DNA of 63,246 nucleotides, the filler included, from Olpidium bornovanus S191 (lineage: Eukaryota; Fungi; Olpidiomycota), in assembly GCA_017911155.1 (NCBI GenBank). It is 30 parts of 30 records of this genome, joined end to end, with 100 filler letters (N's around TTAATTAATTAA, not from the genome) between each part and the next. Parts side by side here need not be neighbours in the genome. Positions count along the whole stretch, not along the records: positions 43,995 to 46,097 come from JAEFCI010012809.1; 29 more parts are not named here. One strand, written 5' to 3'. Of the stretch, positions 2,891 through 46,231 are shown in pieces. The translations under genes were made by a program, and so were the position numbers. The notes beneath the pieces are model-generated. The model ran no database searches, was not told where the DNA came from, and was given only the letters and a program-made list of their open reading frames with translations. Each line of letters opens with the position of its first letter. The stretch's first letter is position 1.

Positions 2891-3400
2891 TTAGAAGTTG
2901 TGGGCGTCCATGGCTGGGACAGCTGGATTGGGGCAAGCGGCAGCGCTGTCATAGCCTGTGCCCGAATGCGGGAAAAGAAGCAAGTAATGAGGAACCATGA
3001 GGGTTTGCTCGTTTTGCAGCCTGTGTACGGGAAACGCATCTATTCTGCACGCCTCCGGTGCCTGGCACCAGGAGGAAATGTGCTTCAGCAACATGTTCGT
3101 TACGCTGGCCATAAGGGCGATGGTCTGGCCAAATGTCCAGTCCAGCTCCACAAACTGCTGATGGGTTAGCTGGTATTCCAGATTTGAATTCAGATCCTGG
3201 CTGTAGCGAACGTTTTTGATGCCGGAGATGTGCTCAACCTGAAGGTGCTCAATCCCCAGGTCAAATTAAATGTCGACCAGATATGCAATTGAGCAATGGA
3301 ATGCAGGGTCCGCATGCCCTGGGAGTTCAGATAGATAATAATGGCTATATATGTCAGAACAAACAACCGGTGACCAGGTATCCTAAGTAGATGCGTCTGA
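2891..3400 (-). pseudogene. Degenerate putative membrane-protein relic with a WTFGQ motif
   Basis: Reads ...QFVELDWTFGQTIALMASVTNMLL, resembling the W[GT]FGQ-I-AL motif of fungal hypothetical membrane proteins. Upstream frames are broken. Confidence 0.25.
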
Positions 3401-3735
3401 ACTTTGTTAGACCAAAAAATACAATGACCAAACCCTCGGTGTTGTCTCTCGGAGATAGCACCAGAGCCACTTTAAATTCTGGTCTGCGCACATACTAAAA
3501 GCCCCAGGGTGTCCCTTCTTGTCGTAACTTGTGGCGCAGGGAATTCTTGAGGTCTTCAAGCGTTTTGCTCTTCGACTCGGTTGCCGCGCCGGCGCCTTGC
3601 GTAGTTTTGGGCGCTTTGGTCCATTGATGCGCATGTCACGCCAGGCAGGTTTTTATATGGCGGGAAAACTGTCGAGATTCGGTACCATGAGCAGAACCAG
3701 CTCCCCATTACAGATTTTAGGCCAGGTTAAACGCA

Positions 3736-3870
3736 TTTGACGCGGTGCTTTATGTCGGATTCGATGCCAAATTTGATGCTGCATTCAACGCAGTATTTAA
3801 TACTCGATTTTATGCTGGATTAATGCTTGAATTTAATGCTTGATTTGACGTGGGGATGATGTAGGATTTG
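3736..3870. repeat. Degenerate 12-bp tandem repeat, consensus about TTTGATGCNGGA
   Basis: Units: tttgacgcggtg / ctttatgtcgga / ttcgatgccaaa / tttgatgctgca / ttcaacgcagta / tttaatactcga / ttttatgctgga. Confidence 0.6.
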
Positions 3871-4012
3871 ATGACAGGCCCCAATTGGTTTCATGTCGGA
3901 TTTGAGTCTGGATTTTAATCTCGCTTTTCCGAAGGCGAAGGCAAAGCCACAGGTAAGAGCGGAGACGAAAGCGAATGCACGAAGGCGAGATTGCGAAAGC
4001 GGCAGCGAAGGC

Positions 4013-4112
4013 NNNNNNNNNNNNNNNNNNNNNNNNNNNNNNNNNNNNNNNNNNNNTTAATTAATTAANNNNNNNNNNNNNNNNNNNNNNNNNNNNNNNN
4101 NNNNNNNNNNNN
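4013..4112. other. Artificial contig spacer (N44-TTAATTAATTAA-N44), first of 29 identical copies; the last is at 58503-58602
   Basis: Identical 100-nt block recurs 29 times, and the 12-mer puts stop codons in all six frames. Confidence 0.99.
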
Positions 4113-4562
4113 CGCGGTGCGCAGACTACAATTGCATAATTGAGAAGTGAACTCGTTACAGATGGTATGCACACCCTTCCTCCTGTGCGTGTCGACGACA
4201 GGCCTCATCGTGTTCTGTACTTTTGGCGCCATGTTTGCCGTGTGCCCTGCTTGTTCCTCCGGGGATTCCGGCGCAGGTTTCGTTTTGTTCGAGCTTATTT
4301 CGGCGTTGTGCAAGTTTCGTTTTGCGGACTTGCTCGCCTTCGCACTCAGGAGGGGGAGGGATGCCGTGACTCTTTGAAGACTTCCTCGAAAGTGACGACA
4401 CCCCTTCCCTTCCGTCTCCCGCTGCCCGGACCCTCGCGTTTCCCGAACCTCCTCCTGACAGCCAGGGTTCACAGGCTTCCTACATACCACGGCGAGGAGG
4501 ATCAGGGGGCTCGTACTTCCTTTTGGCGCGGACGGCTTACGCCGACCGCGCCTCCACGGTGC

Positions 4563-4728: not shown

Positions 4729-6240
4729 CGCGTCCGCGGACCCGGACCCACCCCGCTCGCCCTCGCGCCGGAGGTCCCGGCCTCACTTCCCGAACACGAG
4801 GGCTCTCCTCCTCCCTCGGCCATTGTTTCGGGCGACGCCGCCTCCCTCAACCGGAAGAGTTTCAACCCCTTTCCCGCCGTCTGCCCTGCCAGTTGTGTCC
4901 CATCCAACTCTCGCAAAATGTACGTACCTGCCTCTTCAAAAGCTTCTTCGATCACGTAGGGGCCAAACCACTGTCTCGCAAACTTCTGATGAGTCCCCAG
5001 CTCTCCGTCTCCACATGCTCGTTCCGTTTGAGGACCCAGTCGCCTGCCCGTAGGGGGCGTGGGTGACGCCGACGGACCCGATCCACGCGCGCTTTTTCCT
5101 TCTCTCTCTCCTTCCGGAGCCGCTCCAGCGCCCTCTCGATGTCGTCCTGGGGATTTGCGACCGGCCCCCGGGGGCTACGGGACCGTTCACAGGGGCCGGC
5201 CTGTCATCCATATTTTGACTGTGATCTTATCTGCCCGATGCTGTTCTCTTCGAAACTGCGTGAGGGCATGTCCGCATATACGATATCGCATTCGCCTGCA
5301 CAGGGCTACTCGCCGTACTTCTGCGTTCATGGCGGTGCCCGAAGTCTCTCCAGCTTGGGCGAGGTGCATGACAGCCGACGGCCTGTGGACGGCGTAAAAC
5401 GCGAGCAGCCGACGAGGATTCGTTTGGCGAATGCTTGGAGATTGTGAAGCAAGCGGAGTGCAGGTTTAAACCGTCCGTGACCTCACGTCTTCCCAGGAAA
5501 TCCCATCCCTGCTGCACATTTTCCAACTGGATTGTGCTGCAGGGCTTGTCGGCAAAACGGTAAAAAGACCACTGCTTCCTATGGCACGAGTAGGTGTTCT
5601 TCTCTGCGGACTTTGAATTGTGGAGAGCGGGCGTCCGCGCGGGTCTCCACGCAGGCTTCGCCCATGGTCGCCGTCTCACGTCGTCTCCCTCCTTCTCCGC
5701 GCGGTCCCGGTGGGGAGTGCGTTGGCGGGGTGTGGCACACGCGGGGCTTCCGGAGGGGGTGCCGAACGGGGGTTGTAGGGGGGTTGTCGGGGGTTTGTCT
5801 CGGGGGTTGGGCCGATCACGTGACCAGGGCCCGCAAGGGTGCCTGCGGCGTTGGCCCCGGACGGTGCCCCGCGGCGCGCGCGCATCACAATCTGCCAAAA
5901 AATCTTCGCTTCTTTCTCACGCACAGAGAAGATTGGCGGCATCTTCACCCCTAAATGCCGCGTCCACGCCTAAAGAAAGACAATGTAAGCGTCGGACAGC
6001 GGGTATTTTGGCTGATTTGTGAGGAAGTTGGCCAGAAGTGCTGCATTATGAAGGAGAAGCAGCTTAATCGTACACTGCCCCGTGGAAGCACACTGCTACC
6101 CCACCGGATGACGCAGATTAACCTGGCTAGCCCTCACTTTTCTTGCCCGTCCCAACCTGTGAAGTAACCACTCAAAGAACCACTTGCCTCACTGTCTGTG
6201 TTGTCATGGCAGGGGTGCCTTCGTCACATTCTGCGAGGTG

Positions 6241-6344
6241 GAGAGAGCGAGAAAAAAAGCGAGACACGGAGAAACGGAGAGAGAAAGAGCGAGAAAAAGA
6301 GCGAGAGTGCGAGAAATAGAGAGAGAGAGCGATTCGAGAGAGCT

Positions 6345-6388
<44 letters not shown>
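6241..6388. repeat. (GA)n-rich microsatellite
   Basis: GA-rich tract ending in a pure (GA)n run. Confidence 0.9.
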
Positions 6389-6391
<3 letters not shown>

Positions 6392-6670
6392 CTTTTCCCC
6401 GAACCCTTTTCCGACGTGCCGCACCTGGAGGCAGAGCGCGCAACACGTTGCTACTGCTGCATGCTGTTGACAGTGTGCCAGCAGCATGGTAGCATGCTGC
6501 CGGAAGCAGCCTGGTGCCAGCACAGTGCGTCCAGCGTGGTTTTCTTCCAGTGTACTCCATACTCCTGGCAGCCTGTGTCCACAGTGCTGCCATACCAAGT
6601 TTTTCGTGCTGGGGTATGGTGCACCCAGCTTAGACTCAGCAATTGTATCATATTTCAAAAAAAACTTCCC

Positions 6671-6747
6671 GTACATTTCGGGTACATTGAGGGTACATTT
6701 CCGGTACATGCACATCACGGGGGGGGGTCACCGCCGGGGTATAAAAG
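6671..6747 (+). promoter_or_regulatory. Four 11-bp-phased GTACAT repeats followed by a TATAAAAG box upstream of the transposase
   Basis: GTACAT at 6671, 6682, 6693 and 6704; TATAAAAG at 6740-6747; ATG at 6825. Confidence 0.6.
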
Positions 6748-6824
6748 GCAGGCTTCCCTCCCAAAAAAACCCTCTCAAAAAAGTTTCACCCAACACGCAC
6801 CCCACCGACCACCACATCACCCCA

Positions 6825-8623
6825 ATGCCAAGGCCCAAAAAACAAAAAGCTGCATTCCAAAGAAATGCAGCCATTACTTGTCAGTCCCGTGCAGTCGATC
6901 GGCAGGAACCAGAGCTAGAGGAAGACTGGGAAGCAGCAGGTGAAGATAATAATGCCGACAACGATGACGAGGTGGATCCCATTGACCCGAAACTTCCCAA
7001 TCAATGGCTAGAGGAAATTGATCCCCCTCGACCAGCCTGGAATTTTGATAAAGCTGGCAGCAATTTGCGAACTGTGTACACAGGTAATTTTGAGTGTGTT
7101 GTGATTTTTCCATTTTTTTCGTGATTGTTGCTTACACATCATTCACCTACTGAACTTTTACAAGGCAATTCTCGTATGACGGGATGGAGAAAGCGCAAGG
7201 CACAGGAAGAGCTGGCAGCACATGCAAAGTCATACCAGCACGTTGATCAGATGTTCAGACGAGTGACCGCAGAAAAGGCAGGTGAAGTTGTGGAAGACGC
7301 AGTTGATGATGACGTGGGTATGGATGAATTGGAGAAACTGGCAGCGGCAGAAAAGAAACTCAGAGAAGGACTTGCACGTATCAAGAATCGAAAATCTGAA
7401 TTGGCAGCGGTCTCTGGATACCAGCTGCGGCGATTCATGTGCGTGCAGAGATACATGGCGCTTGTTTTGGAAGGGAAAAGGAAAATTGAGCAAGCTGCAA
7501 AGGAGAGTTGGACAACAAGCACAAACCATGCTGGGCGGTGCATTCGCGCATGGACACAAACGTACATTCAGCTCGGGAACTTGCCTGAACATGCTCAGGG
7601 GAAGCACGCTAAAAGGGAGTCAATCCTGGACGATGAAGACATCAAGGGACGGTGACTGCAATGGTTGCGTACATGCAAGCCTCAAGATCAGTCAGCTGTA
7701 AATTTCCAGCGTGAGCTGCAGACCGTCATCCTTCCGGATAAGCTGGGCGTGGAAGCCACCGTTGGGATTAATACAGTTACTAAGTTCATGAAACTTTGGG
7801 GTTTCCGGAAGCGCGTTGCGGGTCAACAGGTGAGACTGTTTACATAAGCACTATGTGCATTTTTGTTTGCACTTTTGTTACTGATCTCTGGTTATCGTCA
7901 GATATATTTTGATGGTCATGAGCATCCAGATGTTGTTGAGTATCGCCAAGACTGGGCCAAAATAATGCTCGAGTGCCGAAAGCTCATGGACACTTTTACG
8001 GGCGACAACATGGAAGTGACTGTTTCACCTCACCTACACATCTGGGAAAGCAAACACGTTCTTGTCACGTATGATGAGTCGACTTTCTATTCCAATAATG
8101 CAAAGACTTCGATGTGGATGGAGGACGGTGAATCAATCATTAAGAAGAAAGGTCAAGGTGAGTTTGTGTAATGTGATTGTCGTTGTTGTATTTGTATGCA
8201 CACCGTGCTGACATTGCTGTATGCAATAGGTGGATCACTCATGGTCAGCGACTTCTTGTGCGCATGCCATGGCCCATTACGTCTTTCTGCGGAAGAAGCA
8301 AAGAACTGTGATCTCCCGGAACAAGCAAGAATCATTATTCAGCCAGGAAAAAACAAAGATGGATGGTGGAAGAGTACGGACATGGTGAAACAACTGGAAG
8401 AAAGGGCGTTGCCAATTTTCAAAGCCCTTCATCCCGACTGCATTGGTATGTTCAGTTGTATTGTTTGTATACATGGCAACCGCTACTTTTCGTAAATTAA
8501 CTCATGGCTCGTGATCACAGATGTATTTTGTTTTGATCAATCCACCAACCACAATGCATACCCACCGGATGCTCTCATCACGTCAAGGATGATGCTGAAC
8601 TCAAAGTTAGCCAGCAAGCTGGA
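6825..8623 (+). mobile_element. Spliced IS630/Tc1/mariner-like DDE transposase pseudogene (4 introns, 1 premature stop, 3' truncated)
   Basis: Exons 6825-7083, 7165-7829, 7902-8157, 8230-8445 and 8521-8623 join in frame. Motifs: IYFDGHEHPDVVEYR, LVTYDESTFY, KGQGGSLMVSDFL, PGKNKDGWW, VFCFDQSTNH. In-frame TGA at 7653-7655. Confidence 0.88.
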
Positions 8624-43077: not shown

Positions 43078-44086
43078 CTGCTCGGGAATTCAGGCCAATA
43101 TAGAACAACGGGAGTAACCCCTCGGGCCATCGCCCAGGGAGCGCCCCGAGGTGTGACGAATTAAAATCAAACTGACTACAAAAATTATGCGGGAACACGC
43201 CGATAAAACCAAAAAGGCGCGTTATAACAAGAGCCCGTGGCGCTTTCTTTAACATCGAACGCGCCGCCCACCTTCCTGCCTTGTCCCTCCCCCATTCTCC
43301 CCCATGCTCCCTCATTCTCCCCTCCTCCCCTGCCCGCAAACACACACACACCACTTCCGCTCGCGCCGCTTTGCCCCGTTTTTCCCGTCGCGCGCGAGAT
43401 CCGCGTAAAACTTCTCCGCGCGGTTGACATCTCCCCCCCCCCCCATTCTCCCTTCCTCCTCCTCCACCTCCGCACTCCTCACAACTCCCCTCCATTCTTC
43501 TTCCCGCGCATAGGGCTCCAACTTCGCCGGCCGCGCTACGGCTCGCGTTATTCTTGTTTTCACGGCTTTTTCTTTTTTTTTTTGTTCGTGTGCGAAGGGG
43601 CGGCGAAATGTAGTCGGGGAGGGCGTTCTTCTCGAGCAACGACAAAAAAAAAAAAAACAGAAGAAATCGCGATTTGCGGCTCGCCGCGTGTCCGGCCCTG
43701 GAGTGCGCCGAGAGTCTGGTTTCGCAAACGGGAGCACGAACGCAAGCGAGCAAGTCAGAGGTGCCGTGACTTCCGAATTTCCCCCACCCCCATCCCCCAA
43801 GAACATCCCGATTTTCCGGCGAGGCCGGGGACGCGAGCGACGCATCGCGCACCTCGCGCTCAGGGAGGGTTTTGGAGGAGCTTCTTTCTCATGGNNNNNN
43901 NNNNNNNNNNNNNNNNNNNNNNNNNNNNNNNNNNNNNNTTAATTAATTAANNNNNNNNNNNNNNNNNNNNNNNNNNNNNNNNNNNNNNNNNNNNCGGGGA
44001 GGGGCGCACCGGCACTAACCTGGTTAGCGGCACGCGGGAAAAGGCGTGCATTCGAGTTCGCGCTTACGGCTCACGATTTAGCGCCC

Positions 44087-45128
44087 TCAGTTTGGCTTGT
44101 TCGGCTTGTTCCATGAGACTGCGGGCCTCGTTGAAGTCCATGATCTGGACAGCCGACTCGCGCCGGTAACTAGGCAACATGGTGGCCACGGGTGAGGTCG
44201 GCAAGGCAGCTGGGAGAATCGACGTCGAGTAGAGAAAAGATCGAGAGGGCCATCAAAGACACGCTTCTTTTGGCTGCGGCCATATGACGAGACGCGCGAA
44301 AATTCGAGACTCGAATCCATCGTGAGCGTCCGCCCCCAAAGGCAAAGGCGAAAAGTTACCAACCGTCGGTGGCTTCGGGCCGCTGCTTGGGCATAAACAG
44401 CGACGTCTCAGATGCCCTCCTGCTGGAACCGAGATAGGTCGAAGACATTTTACGATTGAACGACGGCTTCGCGGCCTTTTTCGCCCGGTCCTCAATGTAA
44501 CGCAGCCGGCGCCCGGAGTCCGGCGGTGGATGGGTGGCGAACGGCGCCTGACGCAACTCATCGGCTGCCGCCGACCCCGCGAGTAACTTGTCCACCAGGG
44601 AGCTGTCGAGGTAGGCGAAATCCGGAGGTATGCGGCTGCTGTCCGCGTGTTCCACTACGCGGTTTCAACAGCGCGTCCACGTAGAGGAAAAAAAAACCGG
44701 GCACTCTACGAAAACGTACACATGGCCGACGTTCGCTCCAACGTCGCTTTGAAGTTCGGATCGAACTCTTCCACCGTGGCGTTCAACCGGCCTGCGGTGT
44801 TACACGGCTTCAGCATGTTCGCCGTCAACCGCACCCATTCATCGTCGTCTGTGACGGCGACGTCAAAGAGCTGTTGACAGAGAATTTTTTTTTGTTACCG
44901 AAACAAATCAAAAAAAGGTCAGGACGTCTGATCACCGCCCCTTCCTGATTTGTCTTCCAAAACAACTGTTGTGCGATATTGGCCTGGCGGACAGAGAATA
45001 CTCCCGGACGGGGCCGATTTACCAGGACAGAAAGTTGTCCTGCCGTCCTGATCGTCGTCGAAAAATCTGCGTCCCGCTGCACATATCTAGCCGCGCGTTA
45101 TCCTCCGGCTGCGTCGCGCGCGTCTCGG

Positions 45129-45161
<33 letters not shown>

Positions 45162-45518
45162 GAGCGTCACGGGGCGCCTCGCCGCTTTCGAGCGTCGACG
45201 GGAGTCGTGGAGACGCACCTTGCGCGTCTCGCTCGCGATGTCCGCGTTCTCGGCGTGGCTCTTACCGAAGCACAGCGTCGCGAACAGGAGGTTCAGCTTT
45301 CCTCTCGGGTGCCAGTTGGACCAGCCCGCGGTCACGGCGGCGAGCAAGGGCGCGCTGATTTCGGACGCGAGCGCGACCGGAGCGGCCCACGCGTGGTGGC
45401 GGTGGAGGGGGTGCGCCGCGGGGCCGTCGCCCGCGGCTGCGGACATCGCGAGCCCCTGCCCGGAGCACAGGGGAACCCCGTCCAGCAACGCCTGCAGCCG
45501 CTCTGGATCCGACTCCAT
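44087..45518 (-). CDS. NELFA: Negative elongation factor A (NELF-A/WHSC2) homolog, 3' truncated
   Basis: Exon 45518-45219 (AWAAPVALASEISAPLL...KLNLLFATL), exon 44870-44720 (LFDVAVTDDDEWVRLTANML...GRLNA) and an exon from 44654 (IPPDFAYLDSSLVDKL) splice in frame and parallel human NELF-A WAPPSIASLL..KLKLLLGTL..DSDPWVLMVADIL..G.LN..LPLECQYLN. Confidence 0.78.
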
Positions 45519-46037
45519 CGGGAGCGAGCGTTTCCTCCCAAGGTCGCCCAGGTCGGCGGGCGGTTGCGTTTTCCCCCCTCCTCTTCGCCCCCTCCCGGGC
45601 GCTGCTTTCTCTCTCGTCGCCCTTTGGCGATTTTTTTTTTTTTTTTTTTTTTTTCGAGCGTCGGGTGCGGAGAGCCTCGTGACCCCGACCGACGAACACC
45701 CGAAATGGCTGCGATGGCAACGCCAACAACCTGCCTTCGCCGCAACCACCCGTTCTCCCCCCGCCTTGCGCGGAGGTGCGCCGCCGCCCCCGCGTTGCTG
45801 CCGTCGCGCCGCGACGGCCCTCTCCCGGGTGCAGCGTGCGTGGCGGTGTCGACGCCGCGTCGGTTCGTCCGCAGCAGGACCTTGGATACTCCGCACGCGG
45901 GACTGGTATGGCGCCAGCCGAACGAGCGCCGGAGGGGGGGTAAGAAAAGTTGCGGCAGCAGTGGCGCACTTTTTCTCTCACTCTTTCCCTCTCTCGGCGA
46001 GGCGTCAGCTCGTGTCGTTTCTTTTTGTTTCTCTTTT

Positions 46038-46079
<42 letters not shown>

Positions 46080-46231
46080 CTTTTTGTTTTTTTCTGCNNN
46101 NNNNNNNNNNNNNNNNNNNNNNNNNNNNNNNNNNNNNNNNNTTAATTAATTAANNNNNNNNNNNNNNNNNNNNNNNNNNNNNNNNNNNNNNNNNNNNCCA
46201 GAGCGCGCAGAACGACTAACCTGACCGGGCC

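Follow-up and report, generated by a model that had tools for sequence, protein, structure and literature searches.

The intact 5' portion of a predicted NELF-A orthologue in G+C-rich DNA of Olpidium bornovanus S191

Introduction

In the textbook view, NELF (negative elongation factor) is an animal factor that is absent from yeasts, and to our knowledge the pausing function of its subunit NELF-A has been shown for animals only. A stretch of DNA assigned to the fungus Olpidium bornovanus S191 (referred to here as the window, 63,246 nucleotides in 30 joined parts, filler included) raises the question whether a fungus may keep this factor, and whether it may keep pausing along with it. An earlier note on this DNA had recognized a NELF-A homologue in the piece at positions 43995-46097 (record JAEFCI010012809.1) and had suggested that this lineage may retain a NELF complex together with animal-like pausing of RNA polymerase II.

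Homologues of NELF-A and NELF-C have been described in Dictyostelium and Chlorella, and NELF has been suggested to be ancient and lost in some lineages (PMC4940160). According to the comparative study of Chivu et al. (PMC11482795), NELF-B and NELF-C/D are widespread in eukaryotes, and NELF-A homologues are apparent in some unicellular eukaryotes. Among the fungi, Rhizophagus irregularis, Lobosporangium transversale and Basidiobolus meristosporus belong to the NELF-A-like set of that study, and all three recur in its sets for NELF-B and NELF-C/D; the two chytrids Batrachochytrium and Spizellomyces are confined to the NELF-C/D set, and Allomyces is in none of the three sets (PMC11482795). The public databases as well carry fungal members of the family: GenBank applies the name "Negative elongation factor A" to proteins of Mortierella sp. 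AM989 (KAF9108668.1) and Apophysomyces sp. BC1015 (KAG0167625.1), and UniProt lists a "NELF-A N-terminal domain-containing protein" for several fungi. The Olpidium gene is genuine, but its family was known before from many early-branching fungi, which makes the finding less novel than the earlier note had assumed.

Gene model

Our analysis placed the Olpidium NELF-A gene, with all its features given below, on the minus strand of the piece, with the first in-frame ATG at 45518. Four exons, all of them open and free of frameshifts, sum to 877 nt and encode 292 residues. Exon 1 (45219..45518, 300 nt) codes for residues 1-100, the Pfam match beginning at residue 43, and is followed by a phase 0 intron of 348 nt (44871..45218, GTGCGT...AACAG). 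Exon 2 (44720..44870, 151 nt) contributes residues 101-150 plus 1 nt and holds the most conserved block of the protein, DDDEWVR (44849-44829), which contains W112, the counterpart of human W89. Intron 2 (44655..44719, 65 nt, GTACGT...GCGTAG, phase 1), the position of which is conserved in fungal homologues, precedes exon 3 (44364..44654, 291 nt), which codes for the extended region, for an apparently degenerate HF motif, for the beginning of the disordered tentacle and for SLFMPKQRP. Intron 3 (44210..44363, 154 nt, GTTGGT...CCCAG, phase 1) joins exon 3 to the exon of the tentacle motif VQIMDFNEA, exon 4 (44075..44209, 135 nt), which continues into the start of a charged helical stretch. Exon 4 ends in phase 1, exactly 25 residues past the V of VQIMDFNEA, and each of the four homologues with exactly mapped exons agrees with it in this respect. 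Right after 44075 stands the donor GTGAGC of a fourth intron, the start of which occupies 43995..44074 and includes an in-frame TAA at 44066-44064.

The two junctions of the earlier note (45219/44870 and 44720/44654) are present in this model, with canonical sites and both in frame. The remainder of its layout had to be revised: an additional intron between the domain and the motif (44363-44210) had been overlooked, and the gene does not end at 44087, where the range given in the note stops, since exon 4 reaches 44075 and is followed there by the GTGAGC donor at a conserved intron position. The G+C content of the piece amounts to 57-75% in the exon-bearing 200-base windows and to about 50% in the first intron. 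The first intron also houses a (GA)16 / (CT)16 microsatellite at 45129-45161.

Domain identity and structural residues

The earlier note had named a search with the NELF-A N-terminal profile HMM as a check on its claim, and the product passed the curated cut-off of this profile (Pfam PF23553, NELF-A_N; gathering score 27) with 39.1 bits and an E-value of 8.9e-10. The match forms one continuous stretch across both junctions, from residue 43 to residue 168 and covering profile positions 16-139 of 146. No Pfam family besides NELF-A_N was matched by the 292-residue product up to E 10; a protein with a TFIIS-N/LEDGF-IBD-like domain, considered as a candidate, was rejected, as no such family was matched even at this E-value. 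A phmmer search of PDB sequences revealed human NELF-A only at E<=1e-4 (6gml_U, 1.5e-6; 5l3x_A, 1.6e-6). Furthermore, a profile built from the Olpidium product and 11 fungal homologues retrieved human NELF-A with an E-value of 2e-38, over both N- and C-terminal domains, and aligned continuously with the human protein to residue 235. The gene is almost certainly a NELF-A orthologue, and the proposal of a NELF-A homologue in a fungus is supported by the domain match, the tryptophans that contact NELF-C, the tentacle motif and four common intron positions.

Key structural residues of human NELF-A have counterparts in the Olpidium product. In the human protein, two invariant tryptophans, W24 and W89, occupy pockets of NELF-C (Vos et al. 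2016, PMC4940160), and W44 and W112 of the Olpidium product align to them. D108, D110 and V113 are kept in the alignment as well. P160, Y165 and L166 are kept where PPDFAYLDSSLVDKLLAG aligns to PLECQYLNKNALTTLAG, by alignment only; within the extended region, PPDFAYLD (44628-44605, exon 3) matches human P138..Y143-L144-N145. Thus the product shares with human and other metazoan NELF-A the N-terminal helical domain and the extended region, which wrap NELF-C in human, as well as the W24/W89 pair, the D-x-D-x-W-V block, P138/Y143/L144 and the counterpart of VKLLDISE, while it differs from them by an overall identity of about 20-25%, by the position of intron 1 and by the basic patch residues R66, K146, K168, K170 and R175, which it does not keep. 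The H-F-x-L motif (K-H-F-x-L-K/R in full), near-invariant from fungi to human, reads THPPP in the Olpidium product (44535-44521, residues 191-195), with H192 kept and the F changed to P193.

Several smaller peculiarities were observed in the same part of the protein. THPPP is placed differently by two alignments, the H-F motif being either degenerate or displaced. A low-complexity insertion of about 24 residues, LCSGQGLAMSAAAGDGPAAHPLHRH (45395-45470, residues 17-41), separates the first helix from W44 and is missing from every aligned homologue. Fungi and animals share a tryptophan in helix 1 (human W12) that the Olpidium product lacks. The HDAg-like domain has been reported from InterProScan detection only in animals and Capsaspora (Chivu et al., PMC11482795).

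The C-terminal domain of the family (...FEMN-x-x-x-G-x-W-+-K) was seen in the Basidiobolus, Rhizophagus and Mortierella homologues and is conserved to human, where it binds the PHD finger of INTS12 (bioRxiv 10.64898/2026.06.30.735463). The annotated proteins of Radiomyces (451 aa) and Zychaea (453 aa) are apparently without this domain, which may reflect either a real loss or a truncated gene model.

Tentacle motifs

The motif VQIMDFNEA (residues 268-276, 44150-44124) aligns with the fungal pattern (V/I)Q(M/I/L)(L/M)D(F/I/L) and with VKLLDISE of human NELF-A (human 254-261); its counterparts are VQMLDFNDA in Radiomyces and VQMVDFSES in Zychaea. When residues 180-292 were compared with a profile that covered the post-domain region in 12 fungal homologues and left out the Olpidium protein, they scored 29.0 bits, against 14.4 bits for the best of 2000 shuffled sequences. 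The likeness to KLLDISE seen in the earlier note is therefore one of homology (29.0 bits against at most 14.4 for shuffled sequences), and only the label "Pol II-binding" that it had attached to this segment was loose. KLLDISE is located in the NELF-A tentacle (residues 188-528), just past the HDAg-like region 89-248; the paused complex requires the tentacle, which as a whole cross-links to Pol II, while cross-links to RNA come from K255-D258 (PMC9068813). A second tentacle motif of the Olpidium product, SLFMPKQRP (44403-44377), matches fungal SLFIPKRRP. Judging from the alignments, SLFxPK(R/Q)RP and (V/I)Q(I/M)(M/L)DF are conserved in fungal NELF-A, and the second of them is conserved in animals as well.

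Possible function of the gene product

What the four exons contain, as far as sequence comparison can tell, is an intact 5' portion of a NELF-A gene with NELF-C-binding elements and tentacle motifs. In the mechanism that we propose, the N-terminal part of the protein would pair with a NELF-C/D orthologue, which would in turn bridge to NELF-B, and the result would be a NELF-like complex without NELF-E. Such a complex would associate with Pol II-DSIF early in elongation, its tentacle would touch polymerase or RNA, and the polymerase would be slowed or stabilised near promoters. We consider it probable that the piece represents the first four exons (292 codons), together with the promoter-proximal flank, of a NELF-A orthologue that joins a complex of this kind. 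Membership of an A-B-C/D complex is in itself likely, and the chances of a real effect on promoter-proximal residence time appear evenly balanced. Because NELF-E, and probably HEXIM, would be lacking, the cross-species comparison by Chivu et al. leads one to predict at most a modest increase in residence time and no focal pause of the animal type; a weak "proto-pause" would be the likelier outcome, a focal and regulated pause of the animal style being less likely. A NELF complex and pausing in this lineage are plausible only by analogy with related fungi.

The main alternative accepts the gene as a true member of the NELF-A family and assigns to it a fungal role other than promoter-proximal pausing: together with NELF-C/D, the protein could act as a scaffold for some other nuclear process, or it could be an Integrator- or termination-linked factor, in which case homology would say nothing about pausing. 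The state of the RNA-binding surface speaks for such a role. Among the residues of basic patches 1, 4 and 5 of human NELF-A, R65 is kept as K86, but R66 is replaced by S87, and K146, K168, K170 and R175 are not kept; most of the basic-patch residues are also missing from the three fungal homologues compared, and the HF motif of the Olpidium product is as poorly kept. NELF-E points in the same direction, being restricted to metazoans (Chivu et al., PMC11482795) and thus a partner that is not expected in fungi, as does our literature search, which found no functional work on NELF in any fungus. On the other hand, human NELF-A can be aligned with the fungal family in the N-terminal domain, in the extended region as far as about residue 235, at the LLD motif and in the C-terminal domain. 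The tryptophans that contact NELF-C are kept, and NELF-B and NELF-C/D co-occur with the family in the sampled fungi. Moreover, pausing indices are higher in species with core NELF subunits (Chivu et al., PMC11482795). A role apart from pausing appears rather unlikely on this evidence, and membership of a NELF-like complex with at most a modest effect on the polymerase is the reading that we prefer.

A bolder reading would have the gene stem from a G+C-rich fungal lineage for which NELF is unrecorded, e.g., Kickxellomycotina, Blastocladiomycota, a chytrid or even Dikarya, and would have this lineage run an A/B/C-D complex with a real NELF-dependent promoter-proximal pause. The G+C content and the divergence of the Olpidium gene fit none of the named fungal genera, and no named relative exceeds about 25% identity. 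We regard this reading as distinctly doubtful. If it were true, regulated pausing would be older than animals and could be tested in a fungus.

Relatives, intron positions and origin of the gene

A profile search of 1.84 billion representative proteins revealed 722 members of the family at E<=1e-3, and 209 fetched proteins were ranked by their score against the Olpidium protein. The best 16 of these 209 all belong to early-diverging fungi (35.0-56.6 bits), the best animal sequence scoring 34, and the closest groups are Basidiobolus, Glomeromycotina, Mucorales and Mortierellomycotina. Basidiobolus ranarum (K7432_006958, 56.6 bits) and Funneliformis mosseae (56.4 bits) head the ranking, together with B. 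meristosporus (ORY06555.1, 53.4 bits) and Geosiphon pyriformis (KAG9305486.1, 52.1 bits). Zychaea mexicana (XP_052978730.1) scored 47.0 bits, Rhizophagus 45-47 bits, Lunasporangiospora 43.0 bits and Mortierella sp. AM989 (KAF9108668.1) 40.2 bits, and Umbelopsis, Bifiguratus, Radiomyces spectabilis (XP_051427831.1), Diversispora and Acaulospora fell between 35 and 40 bits. Identity to the known homologues is low, about 23-26%.

Closer relatives were not encountered in the other collections. A word-indexed protein search with a 295-aa model gave no match, which is weak evidence, as this search returned only proteins of about the length of the query and missed Rhizophagus irregularis XP_025172955.1 even though the first 154 residues of that protein were included in the query. 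Two further profile searches, in which proteins of roughly query length or low-complexity candidates predominated, yielded names but no close relative, an exact look-up of 10 ORFs in a collection of 15 billion proteins found none of them, and a scan of metagenomes for relatives was as well negative.

The exons of four fungal homologues (Radiomyces, Zychaea, Mortierella and Rhizophagus) were mapped exactly, and those of Basidiobolus by tblastn. Intron 1, in phase 0 and ten residues before D-x-D-x-W, is placed identically in all five of these genes. Exon 2 measures 151 nt in Olpidium, Radiomyces and Zychaea, 154 nt in Rhizophagus and 157 nt in Mortierella, and its phase 1 end falls on one and the same aligned residue across the fungal genes compared, so that positions 1 and 2 are common to all five (Basidiobolus by tblastn). 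Intron 3, in phase 1 before the motif exon, is also found in Radiomyces, Mortierella and Rhizophagus and is missing from Zychaea, whereas intron 4, in phase 1 and 25 residues past the V/I of the motif, occurs in each of the four exactly mapped homologues. Overall, position and phase agree for all four introns with Radiomyces, Mortierella and Rhizophagus, and for three of the four with Zychaea. Nematostella NELF-A has no intron at positions 1-2, and in read-through fragments of insects and mammals the animal intron follows VDE, at a distance of seven residues. Independently of the sequence scores, the common positions and phases support both the orthology and the fungal source of the gene.

Intron 1 is by far the longest intron of the gene. 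Compared with its 348 nt here, it measures 674 nt in Radiomyces (3229-3902), 689 nt in Zychaea (1226-1914) and 347 nt in Rhizophagus clarus (1232-1578), and the remaining introns of the homologues range from 70 to 206 nt. Since its length is conserved, the first intron may contain regulatory sequence.

The Olpidium gene thus resembles NELF-A of early-diverging fungi in its N-terminal domain, in four intron positions and phases with a long first intron, and in the motifs R/G-W, KL-G/N-x-LF, F-A/G-Y-L-N/D, SLFxPKRRP and (V/I)Q(M/I)(L/M)D(F/I/L). It differs from them in its much higher G+C content, in the insertion of about 24 residues and in the H-P that stands in place of H-F. The Pfam NELF-A_N domain is shared as well with Dictyostelium and other Amoebozoa, green algae, cryptophytes, Capsaspora and ichthyosporeans (Vos 2016, Chivu 2024), but the NELF-A-like proteins of unicellular eukaryotes score lower (at most about 33 bits) and carry lineage-specific motifs, e.g., GEWSAS...LDPLVRVRLLLAP in the G+C-rich algal type. 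The reach of this homology sets the origin of the NELF-A family before animals and fungi.

These comparisons bear on the possibility that the sequence is not fungal at all and comes from another eukaryote or a contaminant contig, its NELF-A-like gene merely resembling those of fungi. An identity of only about 25% to the fungal homologues, the lack of a close sequence in the collections searched and the wide occurrence of NELF-A-like genes in protists would be compatible with such a source. It is nevertheless improbable, given that the 16 best of the 209 scored proteins are all fungal, that the protein displays fungal-type features (W at the R-W position, KL-x-x-LF, FAYLD, SLFxPKxRP and VQxxDF), and that the intron positions match those of fungal genes, with an exon 2 of exactly 151 nt in two of them, and not those of Nematostella or other animals. 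An algal or stramenopile origin, suggested by the G+C content, was rejected: G+C-rich NELF-A-like proteins of that type do not exceed 30 bits and carry other motifs. Allomyces, considered as a G+C-rich source, gained no support, as it is missing from all three sets of Chivu et al. Judging from these comparisons, the gene very probably stems from a fungus that belongs to the zygomycete grade (Mucoromycota, Zoopagomycota) or stands near it.

The gene is one more example that NELF was lost from certain fungal lineages, among them the model yeasts, and not from fungi generally, since early-branching lineages keep NELF-A. Published comparative data indicate that related fungi keep NELF-B and NELF-C/D as well. 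The Olpidium gene adds a divergent and G+C-rich member to the family and no new principle, the point being contained already in the databases and in Chivu et al. 2024.

The truncated 3' end and integrity of the gene

The stop codon that follows ...NREP is intronic, because the GTGAGC donor after 44075 occupies the conserved position of intron 4; it follows that the edge of the piece, at 43995, truncates the gene. A protein ending in ...NREP was ruled out as a candidate, the comparison of fungal introns placing the conserved donor just upstream of the stop. The rest of the gene beyond exon 4 is absent from the piece, and its final 80 bases contain no exon like the K/E-rich continuation of the homologues. 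Intron 4 either extends beyond the edge of the piece or ends at a putative acceptor at 44014 (an intron of 61 nt), with an open exon 5 from 44013; for the second option, a CTAAC branch lies 9 nt upstream and the open frame runs to the edge. An acceptor at 44020 (a 55-nt intron) is an unlikely candidate, as a stop would follow at once and no more than 4 nt would separate the branch point from the AG.

Could the locus be a decaying pseudogene, or a non-functional relic fragment of NELF-A? Its high divergence, the degenerate HF motif and the low-complexity insertion within the N-terminal domain might be taken in this sense, as might the in-frame stop that is met after exon 4 if the transcript is left unspliced. 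However, this stop lies just past a conserved donor site and is hence intronic, the four exons (877 nt) are open, their splice sites are canonical and stand at conserved positions, and the key structural residues are intact, which makes decay highly improbable. Finally, an accident of joining open frames in G+C-rich DNA, where long ORFs are common (several of 130-390 aa lie on both strands of the piece), has a negligible chance of explaining the match and is refuted by the tests run, for the other ORFs of both strands gave no significant Pfam match, whereas the NELF-A match stands above the Pfam threshold and continues across the junctions, with the tail motif and four conserved intron positions backing NELF-A independently.

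Flanking regions

The G+C-rich segment upstream of the ATG (45519..46097, minus strand) is presumed to comprise the 5'UTR and the promoter. The piece 43995-46097 has no Rfam match, and neither another gene nor a Pfam match was found in the 5' flank. Two A-rich stretches are embedded in the otherwise 62-72% G+C DNA of this flank: a perfect run of A24 on the gene's strand (45631-45654), about 115 nt before the ATG, and a 76-nt tract (46018-46093) that is almost pure A on the same strand. Both may act as nucleosome-excluding promoter elements. On the 3' side of NELF-A, a gene for a PfkB-family sugar kinase was observed on the same strand in Radiomyces (5855-7095) and in Zychaea (3685-4210), and this adjacency in both Mucorales genomes indicates local synteny.
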